The position numbers and the translations under genes are program-made. From positions 15,252,001-15,316,000 of the forward strand of contig OZ116704.1 in NCBI GenBank assembly GCA_964199315.1: a stretch of DNA of 64,000 nt. Reading direction: 5' to 3'. Positions 27,479-64,000 of the stretch are shown one piece after another; within the stretch, counting starts at the first letter, position 1, and each line of letters opens with the position of its first letter. Source of the DNA: Orbicella franksi (taxonomy: Eukaryota). The notes beneath the pieces are model-generated. The model was not told the DNA's origin and made no database searches. It was given only the letters and a program-made list of their open reading frames with translations.

Positions 27479-27492
27479 GTTGTTATAGAAAC
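27479..27492. promoter_or_regulatory. RFX X-box upstream of gene 2
   Basis: GTTGTTATAGAAAC matches GTHNYY-AT-RRNAAC at all positions, about 365 bp before the ATG. Confidence 0.55.
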
Positions 27493-27856: not shown

Positions 27857-27941
27857 ATGGCTTTCATGTCATTTCATATGCGGTCATATCTTATCATTTT
27901 GGCGGCCTTTCTCTGCTGGACAGAAGTTACTATTGCCAGTG
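27857..27941 (+). CDS. Gene 2 exon 1, signal peptide
   Basis: MAFMSFHMRSYLIILAAFLCWTEVTIAS; donor gtaagt; phase 1. Confidence 0.8.
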
Positions 27942-30900
27942 GTAAGTAATGCCAAATGACGAACGCAAAGCGCTGTGTATTTACACAGTAAACCTGTTTT
28001 TATATTTGATACTGCAGCTGCATTTTATTGAATCGAAGATAAAGATTCTTTCAGGCGAAATAATAGTCATTTTGCCTTTTCAGATCCTTGTGATTGCTCG
28101 GTTTGCGGGTCTACTTGTGGCGGGAGTTTGAGCTGCGATCCCGGCAAATTTCTTGTAGTGAATGGAAGCGAATTCGGCTGCTTCCAATGTCCAAGTGGCT
28201 CTTTGTAAGTTCTTTGTTGCCTTGTCTTTGAGAGTATACATTTTAGCTAATTTATGTGTTTGTGAGGGTAAAAACTTCGCTTAATGTAGTGATGTCCATT
28301 TTGTAAATGCAATTAATGAAGTACTCGTAAGATACAGTAATATGATACAAACAATGGACTGGGCCTTATCTCATACGGTTGCCGCAGTGATATCTCAGCA
28401 GCTAATATACCATTTTACCAGAGAAGTTATTATCTTATAGCTAAAATACTTAGTCCCCGGTGGGTTCAACCGTGCCGGATTGGTCGAGGGATAGAGACCT
28501 GACAAAGGACAGCCCCTGGTCCTCCAGTTTGGGGGTTGGGCGTTAGGCTAATCACCTAACCTTGTAAAAAAATGAATGATTACAGAAACTGTAAGAGGCC
28601 CTATGCGCCAACTTGGCGCCAGGGGACAGGTGAAGTGAAGGTGAAGCTAAAATGTCAACGTATTTTTGAACCAAACTTCGTTTCCCGTCGATCCCTTAAA
28701 GTGTTTCAGGTAGCTGCCTTCCATCAGACTTTCTATCTGGTTGCCCACACTATGCCAGAATCGCTTTGTATAGGCAAATGGAGATTTAAGGTCTTAGTTC
28801 TACATTTTATTGAACATCCAGATTATAAACCCAAGGTCAGCAACACTGACATTTAGTACCAGTGAAGGCAAGCAGACCGTCAGGTTTTAGTATAAATCTA
28901 CAAGCATTCTATCATGAATGAGGTTCTCTGATTGGTTATGCTACTTACTATCTATTCTGTGATAGTTAGTGAGTAGCGAAGCAGGGTACCCTTGTTCACA
29001 AAATGACGGTCGCTTCTTGGCATTTTCAAAGTGTCTGTGAAGAGGATTCAAATAAAGTTTTGAACGAGTAGATAGTAGTAGAACTAGTAGATATATACTA
29101 AAACAATTAGATTATTTGTTCTCAATTTCTATGCATGATAGAAATCTCGAGCTCATAATGTAATCATTAATTAGTATAAATCTACTAGCATTCTATCGCA
29201 AATGCTATTCTCTTATTGGCTACGCGTATCTTGTTTACTGTAGGTGGTGTGAGCCAACACTATTGACTGATATATTGAGCAACACTCATCCAATACATGG
29301 CCAAGAAATCAGCCGACAGTTGATTGAGTGTTGGTTGAGTATCGGTCGAAAATCGGTCGAAAGTCAATCAAGTGTTGCTTGAGCATCTGTTGATATGTTG
29401 GCCGTTACTCCACTGACACTTGACTGACACACATATGGGCTGACGTATTGACCGATACTTGACTGAGACTCAACCAACAGTCGACTGACACTCAAAACTT
29501 CGACCAACTGTCGGCGATATATTGGCCATGTATTAATCGACAATCGGCAGATGCAACACCAGCACCTGGCCGACATATCGACCGAGTGTTGGCCGATAGT
29601 GTTGACTGACACTACCTACAGTAAACATGATCCAGCCAGCTACTCTATCTATTCAGTTGTAGATAGTGAGTCGTTGAGCAGAGTGCGGTTGTAAAAAAAA
29701 AAGTGGCTGTGGCTTCTTTACATTTTCGAAGTGGCTGTGAAAAGCGTTTAGATAAAGTTTTGAATGACTTGTTGATTAATACCAAAACAGTTAGGTTTCG
29801 CTCCCAATTTCAATGTGTCATCTGATTTAAATAGAATTCTCTAGTTGAACTGCCAGGGCCATACTGTGTGTAAAGTAATAAAAGTTTCATAATAATGAGT
29901 TAATATCTAACTTTACAGCTGTCCAGGTGGCCGAAACAATTCTCAGCCTTGCCCAGAGGGTTTCTATAATGATAACCCAGGACGGTCAGATATAGGAGCA
30001 TGCCAGGTAATTTTATCCAACTTATAGGTTAGAATATAATTTAAAGTTTGTTGTTAATTCACGAACCAGGGATAATGCTTGACATCATTTTCTGCATCAT
30101 AAAGTCTGGGAGTTTTTTGCTACCTTTCTATATTGTAGAGATTGCAGCTATTGGGGGTATTGTCCATGTATCTTTGTTATATGTAATATTTAGGAATTGT
30201 TTCGAACACAAGTGCCCGTGATTAATCACAAACATTTTTGTGAACTGTGAGTGGCTTAGACTAATCAGTAGAACACTGGTTTGGGTGTTTGATGATTACA
30301 TATCTGATCTTAATTAGCATAGATTTCTACAACTTTTGTAGAAATCTATGCTAATTAAGATCAGATATCCATACACCATAACAGTTAATTGTTTTTGCCT
30401 GTTTAAGGTTGATGAATTATTAATGAGTTCACAAAATAAGATTCAAGCTATTGATCAGTCAATCAATAAATCTTTGTTTTAACACAATATCTTATCATAC
30501 AAATGGTCTTAGGCATTGTGGAAAAATTACATACATAGATTACATTAACTATGAACAGGAATACACTGATTAAAAAGATAACTTACAGGTACAATAAAAC
30601 CTCAGATTCTTAGTACTCTTTGCATATAGTTAGGTAGCAAGAATGTCACTAGTGTGAGACAAAGTCAAAATCTGAGTCTCTAGTGGAATTTTCATGTTGT
30701 TTTATGGTGATATCAGAGTTATTGACTTCCTGTTGTTTTCATTAGGAATGTCCTGCTGGATTTTTTTGTCCAGATAGAGGTCAACCACCCAAACCTTGTG
30801 AATCTGGTTTCTATAGCAACAGTACAGGACAAACACAATGTACCATTTGTCCAGAAGGTTTCCAATGTGAAAACCTTGCATCAAAACCCACAGCATGTCC

Positions 30901-33900
30901 ACAGGGTTTTTACAGTGCTGAGGGCAATGCAACATGTACAATATGCCCAGAGGGGTATGAATGTCCAAATGGTACACCGCCCAGGGTGTGTCCCACTGGA
31001 CAGTTTGCACCCATCCGCTCCGCAGCATGCCAGGCTTGTCCTGCAGGTCATCGATGCCCTCGTCAAGGAATGTCTGCTCCTGAGGGCTGTTCGGAAGGAC
31101 AGTACACAAACCAGACCTCGCAAGTGGGATGTAACACTTGTGAAGCTGGGCAGGAATGCCCAAATGGTGATCGATCTGTGCCATGCCCAGCTGGTTATTT
31201 TAGTAAATATGGAGAGTCCAACTGTACATCCTGTGAATCAGGAGAGTACAGCAGCAATGGTTCATCTGTGTGTTTGCCGTGTCCTGCTGGAAAACAATGT
31301 GTGGACCCTGGTCTTGAGCCAGTGGATTGTACTAATGGAACTTTTTCTGGCCCAGGAGAAAGTGTTTGTAAGCTGTGTCCACAAGGTGAGTAGCTAGTCA
31401 TGCTTTAGATACAAACGTAGCTTCGTTCTATACATGCAGAAATCCAAGAGAACATTTGAAGCAAAACCCGGTGGGGATGTTTATATATGAAGAGTTACCA
31501 TCCTATTATCTTGATATAGCATACTAAATGGTAAAAGCACTGATTTTTACCTTTCGCTTAATTATTTGTCATGAATGCCTACCCATTGAGTTTTCATGCA
31601 CGGACTTAAAGTAAAAAAAGCTATGTACATCATAATAAACAGTACCACATAAAAGCGCTGCTTGGTAGCTTTCATGTCAATGGTCACATGCTGGGGTGTC
31701 ATCTACAAAGGTAAAAATTAAAGTCACATAAACTGATTTAAGGTTTGATCTTGGACGGTAATGAAAGGGTTACATTGATGATTATAGAACTTGTTACTAG
31801 TTAATAAAGCAGATGAATAAGGCTTGCATCACCACATGTTTTGTTGTATTAGGTTACCAGACCACACCAAGTCGAACCTCTTGTGTACCATGTGCAAAAG
31901 GCTTCTACTGCCCTGATCCAAGGTTAGTAGTGATATATTTTTCAGTTTATCACCAAATTTCCTTCTCATCTTTTTCAAAATGTTCAAATTGTTCAGTCGG
32001 TCAGTCGGTGGGGGGTTGGTCAGTTAATTGGTCAGGGAACCATCTTGTAGTATGAGAAAGACAGTCAGACATTTATTCCTTCACAGAGTCATCAATCTGT
32101 CAATCACTGCTAATGCCATGTGTTTGAAAATTTCTAGTAATCCACCAGTGCCATGTCCTGCTGGCATGTACTCTTTGGGAGGTAGATTTGAAAACTGTAC
32201 AGCATGTCCAGCTGGAAGTGCATGCCCTGATCCTGCTGGTGCACCTGTGGCTTGTACTGGAGGTAAACATCCCTTTTTATTGGTTATTAAAGTTGCAAAC
32301 TTAATGGCAGCTAGAGAAGTCAATGTATAGTTTCTCTTCACATATTTAAATATATAAATTGTCCAAAACAATGTCAAGTAGACATCTATATGTATTTCAA
32401 AATTATTAATAATTATATTAAAAACTCTTTTTTATTGGTTATTTTGAAATAAATAAGGTATTAATAGTTAAAAAGTATAGTTTTAGAAAAGTTGAAAATA
32501 TTGCAAAATAATATAATTTCAGCAACGTATGCTGAGGCACTGTCCACAACATGCAAGACTTGCCCTGCTGGTTACAGCTGCCCAGAGAACAAGAGAACTG
32601 AAATATGTCCATTTGACGACTCTCTGGGATACTTTTATAGTACTGACTCAAGTAAGTTGCCATACTTTTTGTGAACAATCATTTGTTTTCAGCTTATTTT
32701 AGTTAAGATTTTCCTTGAAGCAGTTTTAAATTACCTGTCATGTGCAAAGGATTTATGACTGTGTACAATGATAAGGTTTGGTTTTGTGATTGTTGAGCTC
32801 TTGAATTGAAAAAAAATATTACAAGGACACTTCAGCTGAGTTAGTTTTACACTGTTATCTTTTTAGTGGTATCATGTGCGCAGTGCCCCAATGCAAGCTC
32901 AGGACAGATTTGTGAATCTCGATACAAGTTACCCATCAACTGTAATGCTGGAGAACTCCCCAGTCAGAATGGGACCGTCTGTATTAGATGTCGGCCAGGT
33001 TACTACTGCCGTACACCCCAAGAGGGAGAGGTAGCCTGTGATGTGGGACAGTGGTCACTGGGTGGAGCAACAGAATGTAATGACTGTCCAAAAGGCTATG
33101 CTTGTGCAAATAGTGGATCGTTACCTCAGCCTTGTGATCTTGGACATTACACAAATGAAATGAACTTACTCACTTGTAATCAGTGCCAGGCTGGGTTTAA
33201 ATGTTCAACGACCTCTGGCGATCCTGTGGCTTGCACAGCAGGTATGGATATTGTCACAAATGCTGCAGACAGTGTTTTGCCTGTTATGTTTTAATTAACC
33301 TGTTGAATAGCATTGGGTTTTTTTAAAGAGATGTTTACCAAGACTCTACTGCTTCTTTAGACAACCAACATTGATATCAGAATTCATGGTACAGTAAAAC
33401 TAATGTTACATTGACAGAAATGAAAGAAATTGTGATAAATCATAATTACTTGATTATTGGGGGTTTCATTGAATGATATCTAATAATACATTTAAGTAAC
33501 TTTATTCAAGTGTCAAATGTTCTTAGCACTGTTCTGCTAATTGGAGACACTGTAAATAAATAAACAAATATTTCAAAAAAAAACATCACTTGGTTATTCA
33601 AGTTTTGCCACCAGTGTTTCGTTAATTTAAACAATCACCAATCCATTTAAACTTCAGGTACATATAGTGATATAGCAGCTACAAACTGCACAACTTGTCC
33701 CCCTGGTTTTGCATGTCCAAACACGTCAGACTCCACTGCCCAGTACACATGCCCTCTAGGGACGTACTCTGTTGGTGGTAAAACTCTGTGCACACCGTGT
33801 CCAGTTGGAAAGTTTTGTCCCCACAATGAGTAAGTTTTTACTTGCTGGCATTCTCCAGTGACTGTACATGTATGTTAATGGCATTGTTATGTGAGCATTC

Positions 33901-36900
33901 CTGTGTAGCAATTTTAACAATTAATGCTTTTATCTTCTAATACTTTGGGATACTGTATGTGGAATTATTACTTGTTTGTGTGGCCTGAATAAAATGTTTG
34001 ATGAATTTCTTTGAAATAGTGACTACTCAGTCTTTTTTCATTTCCAAGAAGGGACTTACCTTACAATTATAATTTCACTAATGCTAACATAATCGTTGTT
34101 TAAAAGGCCTAATTACCATTGATGTAACCATTCTGTAGTAGTTTTCATCACTATCCTCATCATCCTCATCATCCTTCTAACACCTAAGGTGGGGTGTGTG
34201 AGGTTGAAGTAGTTTTCTTAGAAAAGGAAAAAGACACTATGTGAAGTTCTACTGACAGTTATCTTAATTTGAAGTGGTTATATTTCAGGTTTTGTGTTGT
34301 GGAGGTGGTTAATCAGGCTTTAGCTTGGACGCTTGGTGGCCCCATTTCAGACCAAGTGATGATACTCTTGAGAATTCATGCTCTCAGATTTTCAAATAGT
34401 TCCATATGTATGAAGGAATAAATTTTAAATGGATAAAAGAAAAATTCTCTAGAGAACATCCCATGGTCTGTAATGGAAAAACAAACTTCCCGAGCTAAAG
34501 CAGTTTATATTAAGGGCAAACGCTCAATAGAGAAAATCAACTCTGTGAAAGTCTCCACAATGTGGCAAATTCTATCAACAGGCAATTTCACCTGTAGCAT
34601 CAAGGGTTATGGCCTTTAATGAAACAACTGGCTATGTACAGTGTGACTATCTTTTTAGCTGTTTATTTATATTTTAATTTCTAAATTGTAGCAAAGACAT
34701 TGAACTTGATTGTGAACCTGGCTATTTCTCGACGGGAGGGAAGAAAGATTGTGATCCATGCCCTCCAGGATACAAATGCCCTAATGCAGATGGCATCACC
34801 AACCAAGCTTGCGGTGATGGTGAATATGCAATAGGAGGTGCAGCATCGTGCACAGAATGCCCTAAAGGCTATGCCTGTCCAAACACAACCACTGATTACA
34901 TGATCAAGTGTGAGCCTGGCTTTTATGCAACTAGAAAGAAGACAGTATGCACAGCTTGTAAAGCAGGATTGTAAGTGTTAGCCTAAGGGTTTTCTGTTTT
35001 GTTAACTAATCATGCATCAGCTGCATTGATACATATATCTTATAAACCAAGCACAAGGGCCATAAAGTGAAGCCTTGGAGCCGACTGGCTCATAGTTGCC
35101 GGAGCTTATCCCGGTTTCTGTAGCATGAAGCGGCTAGTAGTATTTCTACTCCCCCTGGACAGGATGCTAGTCCATCACAGGTCACTGCCCTGCAATTTGT
35201 TAGGTTTCCCCAACAATTCACCAGTACCCATTTATACTCCTGGGTGGAGAGAGGCAATGTGAGAGTTAAGTGTCTTGCCCAAGAACACAACACAGTGTCC
35301 CCGACCAGGGCTCAAACCCGGGCTGCTCAATCCAGGGACGAGCGCAATTAACCATGAGGCCACCGAGCCTCACACACACAAGGGCCATACTGGGAGAATA
35401 TTGGCCCGAAGTCTTGACAGTACGGACCAAGCATAGCGAGGTCAGTACAAAAAGGACTGGCTGCCGGTATTTTCCCAATATGGCCCCAAGCAAGCTTGGT
35501 TCATAAGAGATTTATAACACGACTGAAACTACCCAAAAATCTTCAAGAGTAATCTTGCAAGATCATTCGGCACAGTACCCTGTCCAGTACTTAGAGAATA
35601 TTGAACTGGCAATGGAGCAGTCTGATTGCTTAATTTTTGTTGTTAGCCCTCTGAACTAACTTAAAGTCATGTAATAATTTAAGTTAGTGAATTACTTTTT
35701 AAGTTACTAAGTTATACAGTTTAAAGAAGAACTTGATTTATCCCTTATTGGATTAATGCCCACCTGAGGAAATCCAAAGTCATAAGTTGCCATATTTTGT
35801 TCAAAATACTGTCAAACCTCAAAAGAACAGGAACAAAAAATGGTTCAACAGTGGCTGTTGAGACTTAAATCCATAGCTATAGGTTATAATTATTTATATG
35901 GTGTCTATATCACTAACATGTATGTGAGGTAACACATGTGTAAGTAGAAAAAAATAATAATGTGATCTTTGATGATAAACGTTTACAGTTACTTGTGATA
36001 ATACATTGTTCATGTGTAGCCTGATGCAGTCTGAAGAGTCCCTTTGCCGGGACAAAACAAAAGCGTTGCGTCAGGCTAGCCATGAACAATGTAACTGTCA
36101 ACTTTTATTGTCAATTTTCACTTGTGAATCTGTGTGGTCGGGAATCCTTATGCGATATAAGGCAAGATTGCTGGCATCATTTCGTTAGAGAATGGGACTT
36201 TGAGCATGATGCTCAGCGAGTTTGCCAAGCAGAAAGGTCTCTGAAGAGTCCCTTGGCTAGCCACGAACAATGTATTATCACAATGTGATTCTTCTTTGAA
36301 ATATGTCACTGACACTACAAGTTATGGCCCATTTTCTGGGATTGACATGTGGAAGATTTAGCTAATCTTTAATCAATATACACAGTACCTTAACAGAACA
36401 AAACAGAACAATATTTTGACAGTAAAAATTTTTTTTTGTTAGCTATTGTCCTTATACAGATGCCAGGCAAGAAATTCCTTGTGACCTTGGTTATTACTCA
36501 ACTGGAAATGCGTCATCTTGTGAAATGTGCCCCCCTGGTTATGAGTGTCCATTTCAAGATCAGGCTGTCAGGTGTGAAAAAATTAAATTGTATTTCAGAT
36601 GTTACACACTTTCAAAATGTATTGTTTTGCAGTGTTATTCATCTGCCTGTCTGTCCTTTATTAGTCAGTCAGTTGGTCACCCACAATATTATTACATGAT
36701 TGTAAGGTTCTCCCACTCTCAGTTGACAAATTATACCCAGAGGAAAGTTAATGTGCTCCAAAAGTTGGAACCTCAGTGCTAGTAAAGAAAGAGTTTTTAT
36801 GCTTCAACAAGCCTGCAAATAATTTTTGTCTATAGGCAGGCCATTTGTCAGGGCAAGGACCAGTTTTGACCTAACAAAAAGCCAGTCTGGTTGGACAAAA

Positions 36901-54900: not shown

Positions 54901-57900
54901 TAGCATAACAGAAACTTTGATAAGGTCCCTAAAAACGTGGCTATTTATGCACGTAAAGTTGATAAAGGTAAATTAACCACTGTATGAAGTATTTTTTCAA
55001 GTAGTGTGTTGAAAAGTATGCTTGTTAGGTATAAATGATATTGATTATTTTGTATTTCCTAGATTGGCCTAGACTACCTGTTGTGGGTTCAAACTACCAT
55101 TGTAATAAGTTTTTTTTCAACATTATTGTTCAGATAAAGTGGGTAGTATGTAAAGACAGGCTAACAAAGGGTCAAGGCTCATAATGTTAACATCAAAAGT
55201 TCACCATGGTGATTGTTCTGCCATTGTCAAATGTAGCTGCCTGCCTATTCGACATAACATAGTACCTTTTCCCCCCAAAAATACTGCTTATAAGAATTGT
55301 AAATATTGTTGTTGCATTTTAGGTGTTTCTGTTGACAAGCCTTACATTGATGGCTACAATGTTACCAATAGTTCATGCCCCAACCCTACGTTCCTCGGCC
55401 AGTACACTGGCATCGGTGACATCTGTCCCCCAGGAACATTCTGTATTGAAGGATCCAATGTGCCTGAGGACTGTGCAGCAGGAACATACAATGATGAGTA
55501 TGGTCAGGAAGAATGCAAGGCTTGCCCAGCTGGTTACTACTGTCTGCAAAAGACAGTCACATTTATCAATAACACGTGTCCAAGTGGTCATTACTGTCCA
55601 GTCAATACCACTCAGCCTTATCAGTACCAATGCCCACCAGGCAGCTTTAACAACTTGACTGGGCAGAAGACAGAGGCATCCTGCCTTCCATGTCCAAAAG
55701 GTAGCTACTGTGAAGGTTCTGGGAATTCCTGGCCAACAGGTCTGTGTAGCCCCGGTTGGTATTGCAATGGAAGTGCAACATCTAATATGACGACCACACA
55801 TGGCGGGAAATGTCAACCTGGTTACTATTGTCCTGAAGGGTCTGGATATCCAAGGGAATGTGATGGAGGGAAATTTTGCGATGTTGCAGGCCTTAGTGAA
55901 CCTAAAGGCAACTGTAGTGCAGGCTACTTCTGCAAGTTGAAGGCAAGCAGCTCAACTCCAACCGATAGCACTGGAGGTAAATGTCCTTCAGGGAATTATT
56001 GCCCAGAAGGGTCCATGGATCCCATTGCTTGTGATCCGGGGACTTACTATGGTGGTATTGAAGCAACAAACGTGAGTGCTTGTGTGCCATGTACTCTTGG
56101 AAAGTTCTGCAATACATCTGGTCTCTCTGCTCCTGATGGGGTGTGTTCAGCTGGTTATTATTGCCCGGGTGGGCAGTCGGTTGGCACGCCATCCTTGTAC
56201 GGTTGCCCACTTGGACATAAATGCACTGAAGGTGCTGACAGTCCTACAAAGTGCGAGTCTGGAAACTACCAGGATGAACCACTACAAGACACTTGCAAAG
56301 AATGCCCAGCACGTTACTACTGTAATGCTACATTTGGTGGAGTAGAGAACTATAACTTGTACTTATGTCCTGAGGGTTTTTATTGTCCTAATGGCACCCG
56401 ATTTGCAGAGGAATTCCCCTGTGGAAATGGCACTTTCAACAACTTAACAGGACGTGCAAGTCAGAGTGAATGTACACCATGTCTTCCACGTTACTATTGT
56501 GGAGAGCCAGGTTTAACTCATCCACGGACTTTATGCAGCTCTGGGTACTTTTGCAAGACAGGTAATATATGTACAGTGAGTATAAAATATGGGTTATTGA
56601 CCAAGCTTGAGGTCAAGATAGCTGAATATTGGCCATTAGTTCTTGTTTTTGTGTGTTTATGGATTGACACAGAGTGGAGGTCCATAAGTAGCAAAAAAAA
56701 AAAAGAACGAGTCCAATATCCAGTCATCTTGACTGAGCAAACTTGGTCAATAAAGGGTTTATTATATGGAAAAGGGGACACAGCAGGTAATCCCAAGTGG
56801 GTGAGATAACACCGTTTCACCCGCACAGGGAGTCAATCACAGTGCAGGATTCAGTTTATCTTGCCCACTCACGAAGCTAGCCACATAACAAAACATATTA
56901 AAATGAGTCATAATTGGAGCTCTTTCAACTAAATGTCTACAGTGTGCACATCTCGAGTAAACATTTCCATGTTTTTTATCTTTAGTTTTGACAACAACAG
57001 TTACAGTTTTGTTCAATAGACAGTTTTTTTTAATTTTCAGAAATAGCTTGGTAGCATCACGTCTGGTGTTGTAATACTGCAGTTCCAATTTGAGATGTTA
57101 TCTACACTTGTTAAGTGCCTTTTCTTTAATGACAGGAAACTCGCTTGTTTTTTTAGGGGCTAAGTCTGCCACACCTGATCAAGGAAGCGATGCAAATATT
57201 TGTCCACGAGGAAGTTATTGTTTGGAAGGAACAGATGAACCAGAACCCTGTCCAGCTGGAACGTTTAGTAATGATTTGGGTAAGCTCAATCAACTTTTTA
57301 AGCCTCCCTTATGATTTCTATTTAATATAAAATAACTGAGCTAATACACATGCTCTCATTGGTCGCTAGATGTGTTCTGATGAGAGTTTTTAAACATGGT
57401 TGTGACTATTTAGATTCATGCGTATTTTTTTAGAAATATTATATAAATGCAATAGAGGACTTTTTCTGTGTTTGCACAGGGAGGTTGGGAGAATTCTCAA
57501 AAGTTGTGCAAACCCTTGACTGCATCTTGGGTTTGCATAACTGTCTCGAATTCTCCCAGTCCCCCTCATGTGTAGATGAGGCTAAGTAAACACAGACAAA
57601 GTACTCTATTGCGTAACTATTACTTCTTTAAATAGCTCCACCTTGGAATTGAAAGTTTTTTTGTAATTAAAAGTTTGTATTTTTTATAACTCTGTCTTCT
57701 TCAAGATAGTGTCAATTTGGTTTTTCAGTATTATCTTCATTTGGGTCACTTTACCCTAAACACAAACAGAACACTTTGTTTACACTGGGTAGTAAAGATT
57801 CCTAAATTTGATTTTCAGGATTACATAATGCCAGCCAATGTACACCATGTACAGAAGGATACTATTGTGAGTTTAATGGAAGGACAAACGAAACAGGGCA

Positions 57901-60900
57901 GTGTCAAGAAGGCTATTTCTGTGTCCAAGGTTCAGTCAGCAAGCAGCAAGAAATCTGTCCTGTTGGAAACTACTGTCCAACTGGCACCCATGTTCCCAAG
58001 TCCTGCCCAGCTGGAACCTTTTCTAATACTACTGGCTTATGGAAAATAGAACAATGTACAAATTGTACTGCTGGGTCATACTGTTTCGAGCATGGAAGAA
58101 CCCACCCCACTGGACCATGCAGAGAAGGTTACTTTTGTCCTACTGGGTCCTCAGTAGATAATGCTGAGCCATGCCCTATTGGTTTACATTGCCCCACAGG
58201 TACATACATACATTTTATTTTTGTTTTCAAATTAAAATTACAATTATAACATACACGAATTATTAATATACAACTAGGTACAAACGAAGTTGTCAAAAGA
58301 TGGAATCTCTAGCTTTTCTATATTTCATAACAACGTAGTTAGCCTGAATCATAACCTGGAAAATCTTCAAACTCAACTTTTGCATGAAGTAGATTTTCAT
58401 TTTAATGTCATAGGAGTTACTGAAACAAAAGTCACCAATGCAAATTCACAATTGTGCACAGCACATATACCTGGCTACATATTTGAATATGTTCCAACAC
58501 CTCTGGCATCTGGGGGTGTGGGAATGTTCATTGATGAGTCACTTGATTATCATGTTTTAGAAAGGACCTCTAATGAAGCTTTTCAGGTATTGTGGGCTGG
58601 GTTTTCCTTTGAGAATAAGCAAAATGTTATTTGTGGAATCTTTTATAGACAGCATAACTCTCCTGAAATCTTTCAATCATATTTTGATGAGACTATTGAA
58701 AAACTTCTGTCCTCTGGGAAATATATTGTGATCATGGGTGATTTCAATATTGACCTTTTAAAATGTGTGTCATCTTCGTATAGTCACGACTTTTTGACTT
58801 CCCTTCAAAGTTGTTTTTCTCGTTCCCACAATTGACAAACCAATGCGTGTCCGCTCTACCTCCGCCACCCTAATTGACAACATCTTTATCAACAATCCTG
58901 ATCAAGTTGTGGCTAGTGGAAATATCATCTCTGATATAAGTGATCATTTTTTGCAATTTTGTATTCTGAAGTCTATGAGGGATAAAATTAAGATAAAGAA
59001 ATTTAAACTGCGAGACTTTTCTAGATTCTCTAGGGACAGTTTTAACGCCGATCTGTCTAATGTGAACTGAAATACACTCTTAGATAAAAAAAAATGTATG
59101 ACGTGGACAATTTATTTTCTTCTTTTTACAACAAGTTTAACAAATTGATAAATAAACATGCACCTATGAAAACAATTTCAAACCGCAAAGCAAAACAACT
59201 CTCCAACAGCTCTCCAGGTGAGTATGATCTATGTGTTAAATTAAAAAATAAATTCCAATATTTAGAGGGGAAGCCACATCAGCCCTAGTTGGTTTTCCTG
59301 CAGGTCCTCTATCCTGATCAAATTGGAATTTTGAAATGTTCGTTTTTCAGGGGGGTCGGGAATGGGAATACCATGAGAAAAACCCTTGGAGCAAGGCGAG
59401 AACCAACAACAAACTAAACCCACATGCGACACCGTGCTGGAATTGAACTCGGGTCACATTGGTGGGAGGTGAGCACTCTCAACACTGCGCCATCCCTACT
59501 CCCCCAACAGTGTTGTAATCAGTCCTTAGTAATATGGGTACAGGGTACTTCCAAAAGCAACTTCAATTGAAGGCTGATATTTGGTTGAATTTATTACATT
59601 ACAGTGTTGTGTACAGTAGTTAACTTCTTCTTGGCACTCGGGCTCTTTTTTTGTCATTTGCTGTCTACTTTTGATGTTAAAAGAGATTTTTAGATGCTCC
59701 TCACTCTTGGCAAGCTTAAGTTCTAACATGCAGTTAATGGCGTACCTTACAGGAAGTGCCACTCCTAAAGACTGTCCTTCAGGAACATTTACCAATGCCA
59801 CAGCCCAGCCGTCCTGCCAAGATTGTCCTCCAGGGTACTATTGCGTGCCAGAGAATGTGACTGCGGGAGATCCAAAGTCAGGCTATCGAGCCTGTCCAAG
59901 GGGTTATTATTGTCCTGCTAGAACTGGTTTGGATTGGAAGCCATGTCCCCGTGGAACCTTCAGCAACAGAACAACCTTAAGCTTGGTGACACAGTGTGAG
60001 GATTGCCCAGGAGGCAAATATTGTGGCGAGCTTCATGCTGTTAAGCCAAGTGGTGACTGCTATGGTGGCTTCTACTGCGAGTCAGGTGTTGACAAGCCAG
60101 ATCCTGTTAACTCAGTGAATGGAACATCGCTGCTTGGTAACTGCTCAATTTTAGGATTGCATACAGGTAAATATGCTGTTGTGCTCAGTGACAATGAAGT
60201 AAATTAACAATCATCACTTATATTATCATCATCATCATTGTCATCAATCCTCATCGTGCATATCTGCACATAAGTCCACAGATTAGCCACCATCGATTAA
60301 ACAGGTCAAGCATTGAAAATTACCGCTCAATCCAATGGTGTTTTAATCTTATCTTGTTGTTAGCTTATGTTACTAGCTCAATAAATACTTCACATTCTGT
60401 ACTATATATGTATGTCATACATGCATTTATACCATGCCATGGAAAATACAACCAATCAGAATACAGAAAAACCATTGTATATGTTATGATATTGCACCCA
60501 ACCTTCCCATTGTGTGCCACATGTATGTCCCTTTGATTGTGTTGACGTCTGTATTTTCTATGGCATGGTATAAAATAGTTGTACAATGCTCTCTCGTGGT
60601 ATACTGTGGAATGTCCCGCTTGTCACATTTTCTCGGTATACACAATTGTCTAAAGGTGTATACCGAGAAAATACAAAAGAATCCTGGGATATTCCATGGC
60701 ATGCTGTGAGAGAGCGTTGTATAACTAGTATGTAGGCGTAAATAGTTTCGGAAAATAAAAGGGCAAACAAGATATAAATTGCCCAGTAAATGATATGTTT
60801 TGTGAGGAATTTATCACTAATTGTAAGCCACTCAGTGGCCAACCCGTTGAAAAAGGAATCTTAGAATCTTGTGATCCATCGTGTAGGTTTTGGTGGTGTA

Positions 60901-63900
60901 TGTCCAAAAGGCCATTTCTGTCGTGCAGGATACACTCTTCCTGAGGGGTGTCCTGATGGGAGTTATCAAGATGAGGAAGGCCAGACGTACTGTAAATCAT
61001 GCCCAGCTGGATATGTCTGTCTTGCCAAGGCGACCACTTTCAATGACACTGTCTGTCCGTCTGGGAGGTATTGTCCAGTGAATACAAGTAATCCAATTCT
61101 TTGTGATGAAGGCACATTTAATGAATTAACCGGACAGGAAGAGGAACCCAACTGCGTTCTTTGCACTGCTGGGAAGTACTGTGAAGGCTCTGGCTTGAGT
61201 AAACCAACTGCAGATTGCTATGGTGGGTGGTTCTGTAAGAATGGATCCACAAAGCCAACACCTGATGGAGGTAAAGCATTTATCCGACAAGTTCATAGTG
61301 TGTTTCTCTTGTAGTGTACCTATGGGTCTACTGTTAAGTAGGACAGGTAGGCATCAGATGTCAGAGGCTCGACAATTCAGCCAGTGTATATGTGTTTTAT
61401 TTATTACACTGGGAAGCATGGTGACCTCATGGTTAGTGTGCTCAGCTTTGGATCAAGCTGTCTAGGTTCGAGCCCTGGCCAGGGACATTGTCTTGTGTTC
61501 TTGGGCAAAATACTTTACCCTCACAGTGGCTCTCTCCACCCAGGTGTACAAATGGGTAGTGGCAAATTTAATCCTGTGTGTTATCCTGGGAATTAGACAT
61601 AGCAACATTAGGAGCGTCAACTTTGTTTGTCATCATAATGTAGGTTTTGGCTTGCATCTTAGGTCTTGAATGTATTTTAACATCTGGAGATTTTTTTTCC
61701 TCTCAGCTCGCTGTCCAGTGTCGCATTATTGTCCCAATGGATCAGCACTGCCACAAGTTTGTGATCCAGGAAAGTACTGTTCACGTCCAGAGCTGTCTGA
61801 ACCAGAATTTGACTGTGAAGCGGGCTATTACTGCACATCTGGAGCAAAGGAAGCTAATCCCATGGATGGAGTGACAGGAAACATATGTCCTAATGGGACT
61901 TTCTGCCCAAGAGGAAGCGATGCACCTGAGAATTGTCCTGTTGGAACATTCTTAAACAGCACAGGGAACAGGTAAGATGGAATGATGGTTCACATTTTAT
62001 CTTTCCTCAGTGGCTTTGGCATTTTGAGAGTACTACAGTGGGATGAATGTATGACATTGTTTAGTTTTTCCAGTGTGAACGGATTTGACGATTTGTCAGA
62101 TTTCCACTGTTGTATTCCTAAGAAGTAGGGGGTCAGTACTGTTCCCAATGGTTGGTTCCTCTGTATCAAATTGGAAACCTGGCTTTTCTTTACTCCATCA
62201 TTATGCCTACGTCCTTTATTCCTACAGGAATGTGACTGACTGTATAGAGTGTACTCCAGGGTGGTACTGTGGTGGAAGTGGGCTGCCTGTTCCCACAGAC
62301 CTGTGTGCACCAGGTTACTATTGCACTGGCGGAGCAAAAGATGCCAATCAACATGAGTGTCCTCGTGGATACAAATGCCCAGAAGGCAGTCCAAATCCTG
62401 TGCCATGTGATGCAGGACAGTACCAAAATGAGACAGCACAGGCGACTTGTAGAATCTGTCCACCTGGTTTCTACTGTAATGATACTTATGGCCCAGTCAT
62501 CTCATATGGACAGTTCCTCTGCATAGAGGGTCATTACTGTCCTGAAGGTACAAGGTATGCTGAGGAGTTCAAGTGTCCTCCTGGGACCTTCAACAACAGG
62601 ACAGGCATGGATGACAAGTCAGATTGTAGGACATGTACTGGTGGCATGGTCTGTGATGAATGGGGCCTTGTGACACCATACAAGTTATGTGGTGCTGGAT
62701 ACTTTTGCCGGGAAGGTGCCAACAGTACAACGCCGAACCTTGGGGAGAAGGCAGACATTTGTCCTGCTGGTTACTACTGCCCGCAAGGTACTGGGCATTG
62801 TCCTGTGGCATTTTTACAATTGAAATTTGGAAGCTGGCTAGTTTTGTGGTCAGCCTGAAGAAAAAGTTGTCTCTGATAATGGGTATTTCCAAAACATGCA
62901 AAATATAGAATCAAGTATTGTGCACATTAGCATCAGTATAAGATTTAAATAACTTATAATGAGATTATTCCAAATCATTTAGGAAAAAACGTTTTAATTA
63001 GCGCGTCTTTGAAAGTCTGTTTTACTCATATTTTAAAGTGGTATGATTTCTTTTTCTGAGGCTACCGCTGGAGAATATGGGACATAATAATATTAAGAGA
63101 CAGTGCCATTAAAAACCACTCCGAATTCTCAAGTATCTCCTTCCAGGGCCACAGCCAGAAAAAATGTGACTGAGGCAATTTCCATGAAAAAGTTATGACT
63201 GAGGCAATAGCCATGATTAAATTCTCTTGTTGGGTATTTATTGTGTTTATGATGACTAAAAACAACAAAAACGACAGATATGATTGAGGCAAGTGCCTCA
63301 GTTTGCGTGTTACTAGCTATGGCCCTGCATTCATGTAATGTTTTTAGAAAATTGATTTTGATAACTCCTGTGACTATAACAACTTGGTAATAGCAATGGT
63401 TTTGACCTCATGTCGAGTAAGACCAGCTCATCCATGACATTGTTTTGCAGGTGTTGACAAACCCATTGATTGTCCAGCTGGTACATACAGTCCAGCAACG
63501 GGTCTTCAGGCAGACCATGAATGCTTGAATTGCACTGGTGGAGACTTCTGCAATGAAACTGCCAGGACATCAACAGCTGGACCTTGCAAACCCCGGTACT
63601 ATTGTCCACCTCGTTCAACAAGTGATGAACAATATCTATGCACAGAAGGCCGCTATTGTACTTTGGGAACTTCCATACCTTTCCCCTGTCCATCAGGAAC
63701 CTATTCAAATGGTACTGGGCTAGAAAAGCCAGAAGATTGTATCGCCTGCAGACCAGGATATTATTGTGACAGTGTGGGACTCATTGAGCCAAAGGGCCAA
63801 TGCGACGAGGGCTACTATTGCCCCGAGGGTCAAAATGTCAGCAATCCAGTCCCTTGTCCAGTTGGTCAGCACTGTCCCAAAGGAAGTGCTGAGCCACAGG

Positions 63901-64000
63901 ACTGTCCAGCAGGGAGAGTTGCTGAAAGTTCAGCATCAGCTGATTGTGCTGTGTGCCCTGAAGGCTATTACTGTCTGCCAGAACTTGTTATTCCAGGTTG
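27857..64000 (+). CDS. Giant secreted or membrane cysteine-repeat protein (ephrin-receptor-like / GCC2_GCC3-type repeats), 3' incomplete, at least 4407 aa
   Basis: 36 exons listed below sum to 13,223 nt, every splice phase is consistent and there is no internal stop. N-terminal signal peptide, then continuous CPxGxYC / CxxCxxG repeats. The gene runs off the right edge. Confidence 0.9.
28084..28204 (+). CDS. Gene 2 exon 2
   Basis: DPCDCSVCGSTCGG...CFQCPSGSF; phase 1-2. Confidence 0.85.
28448..28644 (+). mobile_element. Short bipartite RTE-like non-autonomous retroelement with 9-bp TSD
   Basis: Flanking AGCTAAAAT at 28439-28447 and 28645-28653; cctggtcctccag..ggggttgggc..ggctaa head, gaggccctatgcgcca end, (GTGAA)n tail; RTE resemblance is from memory. 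Confidence 0.55.
28888..29805. repeat. Two tandem units of about 284 bp, the second interrupted by a TIR element
   Basis: Units start tagtataaatcta at 28888 and 29172. Confidence 0.6.
29226..29633. mobile_element. TIR element of about 400 bp with internal short ccgac/gtcgg repeats
   Basis: atcttgtttactgtaggtggtgt vs reverse complement of acactacctacagtaaacatgat (21/23). Confidence 0.65.
29919..30006 (+). CDS. Gene 2 exon 3
   Basis: CPGGRNNSQPCPEGFY...GACQ; phase 2-0. Confidence 0.85.
30746..31385 (+). CDS. Gene 2 exon 4
   Basis: ECPAGFFCPDRG...CKLCPQ; phase 0-1. Confidence 0.9.
31853..31922 (+). CDS. Gene 2 exon 5
   Basis: GYQTTPSRTSCVPCAKGFYCPDP; phase 1-2. Confidence 0.85.
32138..32262 (+). 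CDS. Gene 2 exon 6
   Basis: SNPPVPCPAGMYS...PVACTG; phase 2-1. Confidence 0.85.
32523..32651 (+). CDS. Gene 2 exon 7
   Basis: ATYAEALSTTCKTCPAGYSC...YSTDS; phase 1-1. Confidence 0.85.
32867..33241 (+). CDS. Gene 2 exon 8
   Basis: MVSCAQCPNASSG...PVACTA; phase 1-1. Confidence 0.88.
33658..33829 (+). CDS. Gene 2 exon 9
   Basis: GTYSDIAATNCTTCPPG...KFCPHN; phase 1-2; absent from the ORF track. Confidence 0.88.
34692..34970 (+). CDS. Gene 2 exon 10
   Basis: DKDIELDCEPGYFS...CTACKAG; phase 2-2; absent from the ORF track. Confidence 0.88.
35030..35545. repeat. Palindromic repeat split by a SINE insertion
   Basis: Left part 35030-35064, right part 35390-35545 with inverted catactgggagaatattggccc / ggtattttcccaatatg. 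Confidence 0.6.
35065..35376 (-). mobile_element. Full-length tRNA-derived SINE, family B, with 13-bp TSD
   Basis: TSD CACAAGGGCCATA at 35052-35064 and 35377-35389; minus strand reads ggtggcctcatggttaa...ggtttgagccc...ttcttgggcaagacacttaactctcac core. Confidence 0.85.
35993..36283 (+). ncRNA. Decayed type I hammerhead-ribozyme-containing element (retrozyme-like); G12 position is A, so predicted inactive
   Basis: CTGAAGA 36031-37, stem II GTCCC/GGGAC, AAAAC in place of GAAAC, GTC at 36070-72; partial second core at 36241. Confidence 0.55.
36443..36571 (+). CDS. Gene 2 exon 11
   Basis: FYCPYTDARQEIPCDLGYYS...DQAV; phase 2-2. Confidence 0.85.
36808..38087. mobile_element. Non-autonomous hAT-like DNA transposon, 1280 bp
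   Basis: Perfect 15-bp TIR CAAGCCTGCAAATAA; 6-bp direct repeat CTTCAA on both flanks; no long ORF. Confidence 0.75.
38630..38814 (+). CDS. Gene 2 exon 12
   Basis: RNLCPNGTYSLG...QCADPA; phase 2-1. Confidence 0.88.
38946..39059 (+). CDS. Gene 2 exon 13 (ends at a GC donor)
   Basis: SPEPCPPGYYS...STTDSPPE; donor AAG|gcaagt; phase 1-1. Confidence 0.8.
39577..40401 (+). CDS. Gene 2 exon 14
   Basis: DVCLQGGWCDG...HFCPA; phase 1-1. Confidence 0.9.
40877..41185 (+). CDS. Gene 2 exon 15
   Basis: GTGAPTKFPCPPGTYS...MQCSI; phase 1-1. Confidence 0.9.
   Translation, partial: GQEHQQSFLALLELTQIALTCLMPPNVTSVLKESTVQVENQNPEVTVLQGITVQAALMWQSSFHVLMAHTILIMLKPELMNVLTALRAISVKRQQFNLCSVP
42125..42276. repeat. 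152-bp palindromic repeat
   Basis: Terminal attagtaat/attactaat plus inner acaattcaggga / tccctgaattgt inverted pair. Confidence 0.7.
42295..42380 (+). repeat. Possible decayed Penelope-like terminal fragment
   Basis: ttgttgaaatgtcagtcac resembles gtcgaaacgtcagtcac with two CpG>TpG changes; family assignment is from memory. Confidence 0.3.
42441..42770 (+). CDS. Gene 2 exon 16
   Basis: GTYMPFGFNATSG...HYCPE; phase 1-1. Confidence 0.9.
43387..43834 (+). CDS. Gene 2 exon 17
   Basis: GHPVEIPCPVGTFN...CTPG; phase 1-2. Confidence 0.9.
43876..45450. mobile_element. Unclassified insertion of about 1.6 kb filling intron 17
   Basis: CpG-rich start in a CpG-poor gene; aaccacg/cgtggtt inverted pair at the 5' end, T-run, gtgtggtt near the 3' end. 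Confidence 0.3.
45472..46106 (+). CDS. Gene 2 exon 18
   Basis: WYCDAQGLSIP...QSVPT; phase 2-1. Confidence 0.9.
46155..46176 (+). repeat. G-rich run G5-T-G16
   Basis: Direct reading. Confidence 0.8.
46529..46685 (+). CDS. Gene 2 exon 19
   Basis: GPCDAGYICFYNAT...CPEGTY; phase 1-2. Confidence 0.85.
47213..47433 (+). CDS. Gene 2 exon 20
   Basis: RKVTGGQAEDDCTLC...EKCAP; weak donor gtacag; phase 2-1. Confidence 0.8.
47904..48779 (+). CDS. Gene 2 exon 21
   Basis: GFHADVEGLATCKEC...FYCDRQ; donor gtcagt; phase 1-1. Confidence 0.88.
49042..49468. mobile_element. hAT-like MITE (427 bp) containing a 38-nt copy of exon 21 sequence
   Basis: Perfect 14-bp TIR CAGGGCAGGAAAAA; GGGCAAGT subterminal repeats; flanks GGAAG/GAAAG. 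Confidence 0.75.
49838..50418 (+). CDS. Gene 2 exon 22
   Basis: GLSNVTGPCDPGYFC...QATCK; AAG acceptor; phase 1-0. Confidence 0.85.
50687..50930 (+). CDS. Gene 2 exon 23
   Basis: VCPEGFYCDNRY...KQCDG; phase 0-1. Confidence 0.9.
51405..51897 (+). CDS. Gene 2 exon 24
   Basis: GYFCRSGASVST...GPCAE; phase 1-2. Confidence 0.9.
52273..53063 (+). CDS. Gene 2 exon 25
   Basis: RYYCPGGNRVKDP...YCPVE; phase 2-1. Confidence 0.9.
53282..53455 (+). CDS. Gene 2 exon 26
   Basis: GMPQPNLYCAAGYFC...FGNDT; donor gtctgt; phase 1-1; Cys spacing across the junction matches the other repeats. Confidence 0.8.
53681..53935 (+). CDS. Gene 2 exon 27
   Basis: AYKDVSECWNCTAG...NCTA; phase 1-1. Confidence 0.88.
54055..54195 (+). 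mobile_element. Internally deleted SINE family B copy
   Basis: ggaggcgcagtggcctcatggtt...gggttcaagccctggc...tgtgttgtgttc head, body missing. Confidence 0.65.
54272..54727 (+). CDS. Gene 2 exon 28
   Basis: GFYCSTPGQADY...YFCTI; phase 1-1. Confidence 0.9.
55323..56561 (+). CDS. Gene 2 exon 29
   Basis: GVSVDKPYIDG...YFCKT; 1239 nt; phase 1-1. Confidence 0.9.
56587..56888 (+). repeat. Hairpin-rich interspersed repeat, same family as 26318-26593
   Basis: ttattgaccaag...cttggtcaataa and gtcaagatagctgaatattgg / ccaatatccagtcatcttgac inverted pairs. Confidence 0.7.
57157..57279 (+). CDS. Gene 2 exon 30
   Basis: GAKSATPDQGSDANIC...FSNDL; phase 1-1. Confidence 0.88.
57330..57612. repeat. Interspersed repeat with hairpin 57487-57557
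   Basis: gggagaattc/gaattctccc and tgcaaaccc/gggtttgca nested stems. Confidence 0.55.
57819..58199 (+). CDS. Gene 2 exon 31
   Basis: GLHNASQCTPCTEG...LHCPT; phase 1-1; coding frame absent from the ORF track. Confidence 0.88.
58290..59200 (+). mobile_element. LINE (CR1/L2-like) ORF2 relic: APE-type endonuclease domain, disrupted
   Basis: SIFHNNVVSL, VIGVTETK, CGIFYRQHN, IMGDFNIDL, PMRVRSTSATLIDNIF and ISDH motifs; +1 frameshift near 58815 and TGA at 59068-70; no RT domain. Confidence 0.85.
59240..59504 (-). mobile_element. tRNA-derived SINE, family A (second copy)
   Basis: Reverse complement ggggagtagggatggcgcagtgttgagagtgctcacctcccaccaatg is colinear with the 15291 copy. Confidence 0.8.
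59753..60166 (+). CDS. Gene 2 exon 32
   Basis: GSATPKDCPSGTF...LGLHT; phase 1-1. Confidence 0.88.
60426..60729. repeat. Double-hairpin palindromic repeat
   Basis: tttataccatgccatggaaaatac / gtattttctatggcatggtataaa; perfect 16-bp stem 60628-43 / 60656-71. Confidence 0.75.
60887..61270 (+). CDS. Gene 2 exon 33
   Basis: GFGGVCPKGHFC...PTPDG; phase 1-1. Confidence 0.88.
61411..61570 (+). mobile_element. 3'-truncated SINE family B copy
   Basis: ggtgacctcatggttag...ggttcgagccctggcc...ttcttgggcaaaatacttt...ctctccacccagg. Confidence 0.75.
61707..61971 (+). CDS. Gene 2 exon 34
   Basis: ARCPVSHYCPNGS...STGN; phase 1-2. Confidence 0.9.
62228..62787 (+). CDS. Gene 2 exon 35
   Basis: RNVTDCIEC...YYCPQ; donor gtactg; phase 2-1. 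Confidence 0.85.
63144..63327. mobile_element. hAT-like MITE (184 bp)
   Basis: TIR cagggccacagccag vs cagggccatagctag (13/15); tgactgaggcaa subterminal repeats; flanks CCTTC/CATTC. Confidence 0.7.
63451..64000 (+). CDS. Gene 2 exon 36 (end uncertain, window edge)
   Basis: GVDKPIDCPAGTYS...YYCLPELVIPG; open to the edge, or ends at a possible donor at 63997. Confidence 0.85.

Follow-up and report, generated by a model that had tools for sequence, protein, structure and literature searches.

The 64,000-nucleotide stretch of the coral Orbicella franksi analysed here (contig OZ116704.1 of a 497-Mb genome, positions 15,252,001 to 15,316,000, forward strand; hereafter called the window) contains the 5' half of one coral gene for a protein of ~8,500 amino acids (aa). 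The product is a single-pass type I membrane protein and not a secreted filament. Its signal peptide is followed by a Cys-rich ectodomain and a conserved juxtamembrane domain; after the single transmembrane (TM) helix comes a cytoplasmic tail of ~2,400 aa. Taken as a whole, the data are probably best explained by a protein acting as a transmembrane tether or contact receptor, which is a role that we infer.

From 28 kb to the window end, the forward strand is packed with stop-free Cys-rich stretches. A splice-aware dynamic programming model, based on codon log-odds (trained on long Cys-rich stretches), GT/AG sites, and phase continuity, placed 36 exons within the window (27857-63996, +), all bordered by AG/GT and comprising 4,477 codons with no stop. 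A first-pass annotation, made from the letters of the window alone, had already described 36 phase-consistent exons, a signal peptide, and an unfinished protein of more than 4,400 aa. The number of exons was exactly reproduced, the product of exon 1 (MAFMSFHMRSYLIILAAFLCWTEVTIAS) is signal-peptide-like, and the gene continues beyond 64000. A further 80 kb of DNA downstream of the window were analysed (segments L004-L011), where positions marked ext carry on the window numbering (L004, 64001-74000; L005, 74001-84000; L006, 84001-94000). Cys-repeat exons run on as far as ext 70604, and tblastn with the C-termini of distant homologs located non-Cys exons further on, which encode the juxtamembrane domain at ext 73336-73727, segments of the cytoplasmic part, and, at ext 89663-90271, a strongly conserved domain. 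A second model pass, trained on tail composition and with RNA junctions entered, yielded the complete gene with 75 exons, a coding sequence of 25,506 nt for 8,501 aa, and a sole stop at ext 92581-92583 (L006:8581-8583), the reading frame closing without hand tuning. The whole gene measures ~64.7 kb (contig 15279857-15344583, +), of which 28.6 kb lie past the window. The earlier view of a purely extracellular protein had to be abandoned, as this extension shows one TM helix and the long cytoplasmic tail. The first-pass annotation had suggested looking past 64000 for a multi-pass membrane region or a coiled-coil C-terminus: a short terminal coiled coil is present, and the membrane is crossed only once.

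Transcript evidence connects the two sides of the membrane. Raw polyA RNA reads and transcript contigs were placed on ext 69901-75900 (L012) and gave eight GT..AG joints (ext 70069/70309, 70604/71923, 72087/72313, 72486/72896, 73001/73336, 73727/74208, 74396/75053, and 75248/75442), and one loose RNA end ties ext 75584 to 76144. These chain the last Cys-repeat exons to the juxtamembrane exons, the TM exon (ext 74208-74396), and the cytoplasmic exons up to ext 76144. As RNA-seq junctions join them, the ectodomain, TM, and tail exons are parts of a single transcript. RNA runs of 15 studies contained exon 29, and runs with the gene carry coral or coral-metagenome labels. Both this exon and the C-terminal exon occurred in polyA and metatranscriptome runs of several coral studies, and the C-terminal exon also in RNA-library contigs. 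Protein fragments at the exon level (83-98% identical), available from other corals, end at an exon border in every case, so that splice junctions could not be confirmed from them. Among three polyA runs on L012 with the same species label, expression differed strongly between samples: coverage of the gene was good in X24, with 419 reads from one quarter of the run, whereas X22 and X23, both from one sample, had almost no reads outside repeats.

Homology gave a second line of evidence. Coral aa 5601-8501 align with aa 1301-4183 of Lingula anatina XP_013391352.1 (LOC106159584) in one high-scoring segment pair of 2,972 columns with 42.4% identity and 2,129 bits. This alignment is almost gapless, with 64-84% identity in the C-terminal domain and 40-60% across the tail, and it validates the exon model independently. 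The juxtamembrane domains of both species match with an E value of 1e-23. The gene is a coral gene and not symbiont contamination, because its contig is 32 Mb long, its introns are of animal type, and its nearest relative is in Lingula.

Beyond the signal peptide, the 8,501 aa contain only one hydrophobic segment (VLIGAMLGSFALLMVILVIGL, aa 6077-6097), which is the TM helix. In all 17 homologs with a detectable helix, a single TM directly follows the juxtamembrane domain and is succeeded by a tail of 270-3,378 aa. The membrane-region alignment of the coral protein and 17 homologs, drawn from animals and at least six protist lineages, reads PDWxLI, TM, (F/W)R..GW...KYR, ASKGS, and WDY(E/D)xQVDLEGF..L(Y/F).KLE.Q. 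The membrane-proximal tail motif KYR...ASKGS...WDYxxQVDLEGF is thus deeply conserved, in a stretch 50-60% identical to Lingula. On the extracellular side, ~135 aa before the TM, a polybasic furin-like site (KRRRRR/AV; L004 ~9440-9460, ext ~73440-73460, aa ~5938-5943) was observed in the juxtamembrane part, which is not conserved, as Lingula reads TLRRLL at the corresponding place.

Further into the cytoplasm, aa 6330-6801 (ext 77632-78215 and 78684-79513) carry DPxTGxxVPIxxxTIDPxTGxxxPxGG repeats, predicted from alignment A2 to form strings of short beta-hairpins broken by a helical hairpin. For this hairpin region, Foldseek returned no match and VIA-align aligned only the inserted helical hairpin with generic helical bundles. 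About 1,200 aa of the tail are rich in E, K, R, Q, and A and poor in Pro and Gly (1.4% Pro in the helical part), a composition compatible with a region that may be a coiled coil or a single alpha-helix. A conserved C-terminal domain (aa 8081-8343; L006:5628-6208 and L006:7344-7550) and the short coiled coil form the tail end. Pfam scans of the tail and juxtamembrane region, of the Lingula protein in full, and of the Anneissia protein found nothing beyond weak PF07699, and nothing usable came from ESM Atlas feature searches with the C-terminal domain, with the hairpin region, or with the juxtamembrane/TM region.

The C-terminal domain was aligned in 28 members (alignment A1), in which certain A, P, and G residues are nearly invariant, as are two His spaced HxxxH (H169 and H173). 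The residue following the first His is C, T, S, or A in 28 of 28 sequences and Glu in none, and the motif is thus not HExxH. With A1 as input, the structure was predicted by AF2 for the Lingula ortholog, which was chosen for being contiguous and for its 65% identity with the coral exon. The core of this model reached a predicted local distance difference test score (pLDDT) above 96, with the topology helix, three-strand sheet, helix, helix. Compared by VIA-align with 48,161 PDB representatives, it matched best with yeast Wss1 (5xbn, Z 9.0, root-mean-square deviation 3.0 Å over 106 residues), and further ranks were held by Schizosaccharomyces pombe Wss1 (5ln5, Z 7.4), AQ_1354/YbeY, abylysin, selecase, jannalysin, SPRTN, and M1 aminopeptidase catalytic domains. 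Other scores were Z 6.9 for 4jiu (minigluzincins being among the matches) and Z 6.1 for 6mdx, in a list dominated by zincins. Foldseek and the ESM Atlas (SprT-like, YgjP-like, WLM, MPN635_N) agreed on the zincin superfamily. By interpolated aligned ranges, the HxxxH helix would fall on the active-site helix of Wss1. From this model, the domain is read as a zincin-fold pseudo-protease, possibly still metal-binding, that most likely acts as a binding module. When the PDB was searched by sequence with the C-terminal exon or with the A1 profile, no meaningful match appeared, and no reviewed Swiss-Prot protein contains the domain. Eight uncharacterised AFDB cluster representatives do (A0A6J0WJF6, A0A177B041, A0A7J8H1H5, A0A3M0IT01, A0A3Q7QV33, A0A7S2RRB2, A0A6P8GZS6, and A0A7S1KYM7; 250-1,172 aa, 18-29% identity, E 1e-16 to 1e-10), and short or truncated forms of the family may therefore exist. 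Identity of the domain to the coral sequence is 41-45% in Chromosphaera and 40% in Fabomonas.

The ectodomain (aa 29 to ~6076, ~6,050 aa) has 10% Cys and ~160 NxS/T N-glycosylation sequons. It is made of ~150 disulfide modules of the Ephrin_rec_like/TNFR type, partly ordered as a super-repeat of ~690 aa between aa ~2070 and 4900 (offsets 685-711 aa, units 44-49% identical), and the best distant relative (P0001) has a matching period of ~700 aa. The motif CPxGx[YFHW] occurs 123 times in the full ectodomain against 0.9 expected, with a maximum of 4 in 200 shuffles. At a Pfam gathering score of 23.1 bits, PF07699 (Ephrin_rec_like) was the only match, above the cut-off in exon 4 (42.7 bits), exon 14 (28.6 bits), and L004:6242-6640 (25.7 bits) and below it, at 19-20 bits, in most other ectodomain exons; TNFR_c6, NCD3G, and TNFR_ELAPOR1 remained sub-threshold. 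A PDB sequence search with an ectodomain exon found nothing meaningful. In these respects the first-pass annotation was right, as it had named CPxGxYC-type repeats as the only recognisable domain of the protein, likened them to the Ephrin_rec_like/GCC2_GCC3 class, and separated short 4-Cys units in exons 2-13 (roughly 40 aa by its estimate, ~32-40 aa here) from the longer composite units of later exons. Cys-rich domains of TNFR or Eph type add ~2.5-3 nm per 40 aa when stacked, and the ~150 modules, if stacked end to end, could span a few tenths of a micrometre.

Relatives are numerous. Searching 1.84 billion cluster representatives with exon 29 (phmmer) returned 9,315 proteins, 734 of them below 1e-30 and many 4-7.8 kaa (thousand aa) long. 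Among the best 150, ~80 have the juxtamembrane domain and at least 35 have both the juxtamembrane and the C-terminal domain; organism names were assigned for only ~25 of these 150. Named animal members are Lingula, Anneissia japonica (LOC117121631), Ptychodera flava, Intoshia linei (OAF72051.1), the fish Nelusetta ayraudi, and the frogs Discoglossus, Eleutherodactylus, Bufo, and Aquarana, and a frog-seeded search returned amphibian proteins only. A region search with Chromosphaera P0003, limited by its word index, gave Lingula alone. Protist members are the ichthyosporean Chromosphaera perkinsii (Nk52_evm8s371), Diphylleia rotans, Fabomonas tropica, Kipferlia bialata (GIQ81354.1), Chilomastix cuspidata, Barthelona sp., Diplonema papillatum (KAJ9462458.1), the dinoflagellate Durusdinium trenchii (CAK9096936.1), and the labyrinthulid Hondaea fermentalgiana (GBG24881.1). 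Similar uncharacterised giants, which the first-pass annotation had placed in other aquatic animals, were hence found by homology searches there and in protists. All member records are called "hypothetical" or "uncharacterized" or carry composition-driven names (SVEP1, cytadherence HMW2, MYH16). Relatives like Lingula LOC106159584 share the Cys-repeat ectodomain, juxtamembrane domain, one TM, KYR/ASKGS/WDYxxQVDLEGF, long helical tail, and HxxxH zincin-like domain with the coral protein. The ectodomain of the Lingula model, however, measures ~1,750 aa against ~6,050 aa in coral (~1,400-7,400 aa across species), and vertebrate members have short tails of 420-490 aa against ~2,400 aa. Members come from Opisthokonta, CRuMs, Ancyromonadida, Metamonada, Discoba, Alveolata, and Stramenopila, a distribution which argues that the family arose near the last eukaryotic common ancestor. 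On the same strand, the gene has a tandem paralog at contig 15166225-15179877, ~72-86 kb upstream of the window start (L014:1441-1899). Its juxtamembrane domain at 15166225 is 39% identical, and its C-terminal HxxxH domain at 15179491 is 54% identical and keeps HCLSHI.

The features within the window are as follows, all exons being on the + strand and, where nothing else is said, taken from the exon model.

27479-27492, X-box-like palindrome GTTGTTATAGAAAC, located 365 bp upstream of the ATG, fitting RTHNYYWTRRNRAC on both strands
27857-27941 (+), exon 1, ATG and signal peptide (aa 1-28, MAFMSFHMRSYLIILAAFLCWTEVTIAS), hydrophobic N-terminus, GTAAGT donor
28084-28204 (+), exon 2, aa 29-68, first Cys units; junction CPSGSF/CPGG keeps the repeat motif
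29919-30006 (+), exon 3
30746-31385 (+), exon 4, 213 aa with 27 Cys, best Pfam match (PF07699, 42.7 bits, E 4.9e-11)
31853-31922 (+), exon 5
32138-32262 (+), exon 6
32523-32651 (+), exon 7
32867-33241 (+), exon 8
33658-33829 (+), exon 9
34692-34970 (+), exon 10
36443-36571 (+), exon 11
38630-38814 (+), exon 12
38946-39023 (+), exon 13, donor uncertain (in-frame options 39023/39033/39063/39081), clear CPPGYY...CLPCKRGFR unit
39577-40401 (+), exon 14, acceptor 39577 or 39592, start of the longer composite units, PF07699 at 28.6 bits
40877-41185 (+), exon 15
42441-42770 (+), exon 16
43387-43834 (+), exon 17
45472-46183 (+), exon 18, exon model and Pfam scan
46495-46685 (+), exon 19
47213-47451 (+), exon 20
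47904-48779 (+), exon 21, exon model and Pfam scan
49838-50418 (+), exon 22, super-repeat zone begins nearby (aa ~2070)
50687-50930 (+), exon 23
51405-51957 (+), exon 24
52273-53063 (+), exon 25
53282-53455 (+), exon 26
53681-53935 (+), exon 27
54272-54727 (+), exon 28
55263-56561 (+), exon 29, 433 aa, largest exon of the window and query of the family search
57157-57279 (+), exon 30
57819-58199 (+), exon 31
59753-60166 (+), exon 32, junction with exon 31 is ...GLHCPTG/SATPKDCPSG
60887-61270 (+), exon 33
61707-61971 (+), exon 34
62228-62787 (+), exon 35
63451-63996 (+), exon 36, last exon in the window, to aa 4477; the gene goes on through L004-L006

Three exons of the first model pass (28970-29030, 35181-35258, and 58414-58586) were rejected as spurious, as they had no Cys pattern and were gone under a higher exon penalty. 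Without them, direct junctions restore the repeat motif (CPSGSF/CPGG and CPTG/SATPKDCPSG); candidate 58414-58586 was dropped because it is transposable-element-like. The first model pass had been misled by a transposon-like open frame within an intron (58290-58835) and by a repeat with the frame ...PIYTPGWREAP..., which the introns of the gene carry at 35181-35258, L006:5272-5457, and L006:9266-9580. The intron before exon 36 contains a 190-bp interspersed repeat (63144-63329), of which at least 40 copies with 79-84% identity occur on many contigs. At gathering thresholds, Rfam detected no RNA family anywhere in the window, including at 35993-36283, where no hammerhead was found. The upstream neighbour (16702-24304, +) is a different gene, with Ig-like and fibronectin-III-like exons followed by a 692-aa Ser/Asp/Glu-rich frame (22226-24304) that resembles a receptor cytoplasmic tail.

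How the protein might act as a tether or contact receptor can be outlined from its parts. Outside the cell, a stiff glycosylated rod would make contact with an external surface, a particle, or a matrix, this contact would be coupled to the long cytoplasmic rod by the single helix, and the non-catalytic zincin-like end together with the hairpin repeats would dock on an intracellular structure, either the cortical or the ciliary cytoskeleton. As far as the sequence comparisons indicate, constraint is strongest on the juxtamembrane/TM/proximal module and on the tail end and not on the repeats. This pattern, together with the variable length of the ectodomain, fits a device whose outside rod serves as a length-adjustable reach or spacer and whose inside parts make specific ancient contacts. 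Several points weigh against this reading. The model of the hairpin repeats has a pLDDT of only 67 and no significant structural match, and the heptad periodicity of the charged helical region is weak, so that this region may be a single alpha-helix and not a coiled coil. The fold match at Z 9 is moderate on the tool's own calibration. The ectodomain length is an estimate from module size and not from a computed structure, and exons 52-75 (ext 76618-92583) are supported by the gene model and colinear homology and not by reads. Finally, full-text literature searches (repeat family, accessions, FMG1, mastigonemes) found no paper on the family and no characterised relative.

Other explanations have to be considered. 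It is unlikely, albeit not far-fetched, that the protein is a filament or sensor on the ciliary or flagellar membrane, used in flagellar surface motility, particle capture, the cnidocil, or sperm, with a tail reaching the axoneme or intraflagellar transport trains. Flagellated cells occur in all named organisms that have the full architecture (coral, Lingula, crinoid, Ptychodera, Intoshia, fish, frogs, and nine named protists), and no fungus, land plant, insect, or nematode is found among the named matches; these names, however, cover only ~25 of the best 150 matches. The lack of the C-terminal domain in Swiss-Prot would also agree with a ciliary protein. The X-box, on which the first-pass annotation had partly relied, is present as a palindrome 365 bp upstream of the ATG, but the degenerate consensus is not enriched, with 7 matches in the window versus 4.85 expected and 19 of 100 shuffles reaching 7, and because it occurs at chance frequency, the motif carries little weight. 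In addition, no conserved ciliary targeting motif was seen (a VxPx-like VHPV in the tail is shared with Lingula only), literature searches found no ciliary proteome or paper naming the family, and the protein is neither a CRMP nor an MST1 relative.

Less probable still is a protective or adhesive surface coat that is functionally mucin-like, as are the Cys-rich coats found on ciliates and Giardia or FMG1, in which the tail would be a cortex anchor and control trafficking or turnover. The huge, repetitive ectodomain rich in N-glycosylation sequons would suit such a coat, as would the widely varying repeat number, with ectodomains of ~1,400-7,400 aa between species, the tandem paralog, and expression of the gene in whole-colony RNA. 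There is also a precedent in FMG1 of Chlamydomonas, a giant repeat glycoprotein which coats cilia and is dispensable for force transduction (PMC12021028). A simple coat, however, needs neither a 2,400-aa tail that is 40-60% identical between coral and brachiopod nor a terminal domain that dates from the last eukaryotic common ancestor and in which coral still shares 40-45% identity with Chromosphaera or Fabomonas. It is very improbable that the C-terminal zincin is active as a metalloprotease and that the protein would thereby serve as a contact-activated protease or signalling receptor: the zincin-like fold and two nearly invariant His on the active-site helix are in line with it, but the general-base Glu of HExxH is absent in 28 of 28 aligned members, and there is no conserved third His at Wss1 spacing.

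The tether or contact receptor reading can also be taken further. Giant Cys-repeat surface proteins are usually dismissed as lineage-specific coats; in the present family a precise architecture is maintained between organisms as distant as corals, ancyromonads, and metamonads, and the conservation of juxtamembrane domain, TM, proximal motif, and pseudo-zincin therefore points to a basic function dating to the last eukaryotic common ancestor. It is conceivable, but rather doubtful, that the family represents an unrecognised surface-to-cytoskeleton coupling device from this ancestor, in which a sub-micrometre disulfide rod, one helix, a cytoplasmic rod, and a dead zincin docking on the ciliary or cortical cytoskeleton would serve flagellar or cell-surface contact sensing, gliding, or particle capture. 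Such a device would have been missed because the usual model organisms are without the full-length form. The tail domains and the juxtamembrane domain are absent from Pfam, and no paper on the family was found. Its definition provides a concrete testable candidate for the coupling of cell surface and cytoskeleton in early eukaryotes and corrects the misleading database names SVEP1, MYH16, and cytadherence HMW2.

Two known systems had been proposed as models for the protein, and kinship with either was rejected. The alveolate cysteine-repeat modular proteins (CRMPs) have a role in regulated exocytosis (rhoptry or mucocyst discharge). They possess multiple C-terminal TM helices and in some cases Kringle or MAR domains (PMC9670195). 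A large Cys-rich ectodomain of EGFR/GCC2_GCC3 type, a signal peptide, and a C-terminus in the cytosol are common to both, whereas the coral protein has one TM, no Kringle or MAR domain in Pfam scans, and a 2,400-aa tail with a zincin-like domain; the single TM separates it from the multipass CRMPs. The mastigoneme protein MST1, which is restricted to green algae, contains nine Ig-like and six Sushi domains and a polyproline-II helix and has no TM (PMC10602792). It is likewise disulfide-laddered, glycosylated, elongated, and extracellular, but in the coral protein Pfam found no Ig or Sushi domain, there is no polyproline helix (1.4% Pro in the helical part of the tail), and a TM is present.

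Fibrocystin/PKHD1, usherin, and FMG1 (PMC12021028) also have a very long, repetitive, glycosylated ectodomain and are membrane-anchored. They differ in their repeats (IPT/PbH1, laminin/FN3, and Ig-like 'beta chunk', respectively) and in tails that are short or multi-helix, and no homology to them was detected. The C-terminal domain shares its fold and a His-x3-His on the equivalent helix with Wss1/SprT/SPRTN and minigluzincins, but has no catalytic Glu and no detectable sequence similarity, and it forms the tail end of a membrane protein and not part of a DNA-repair protease. The Cys module of PF07699 type is shared with Eph receptors, ELAPOR1/2, SVEP1, and SCUBE, including a sub-threshold match to the TNFR-like part of ELAPOR1. 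These proteins combine few such modules with other domains (kinase, MRH, CUB, EGF, Sushi, VWA), whereas in the coral protein ~150 of them are the sole recognisable content of the ectodomain.

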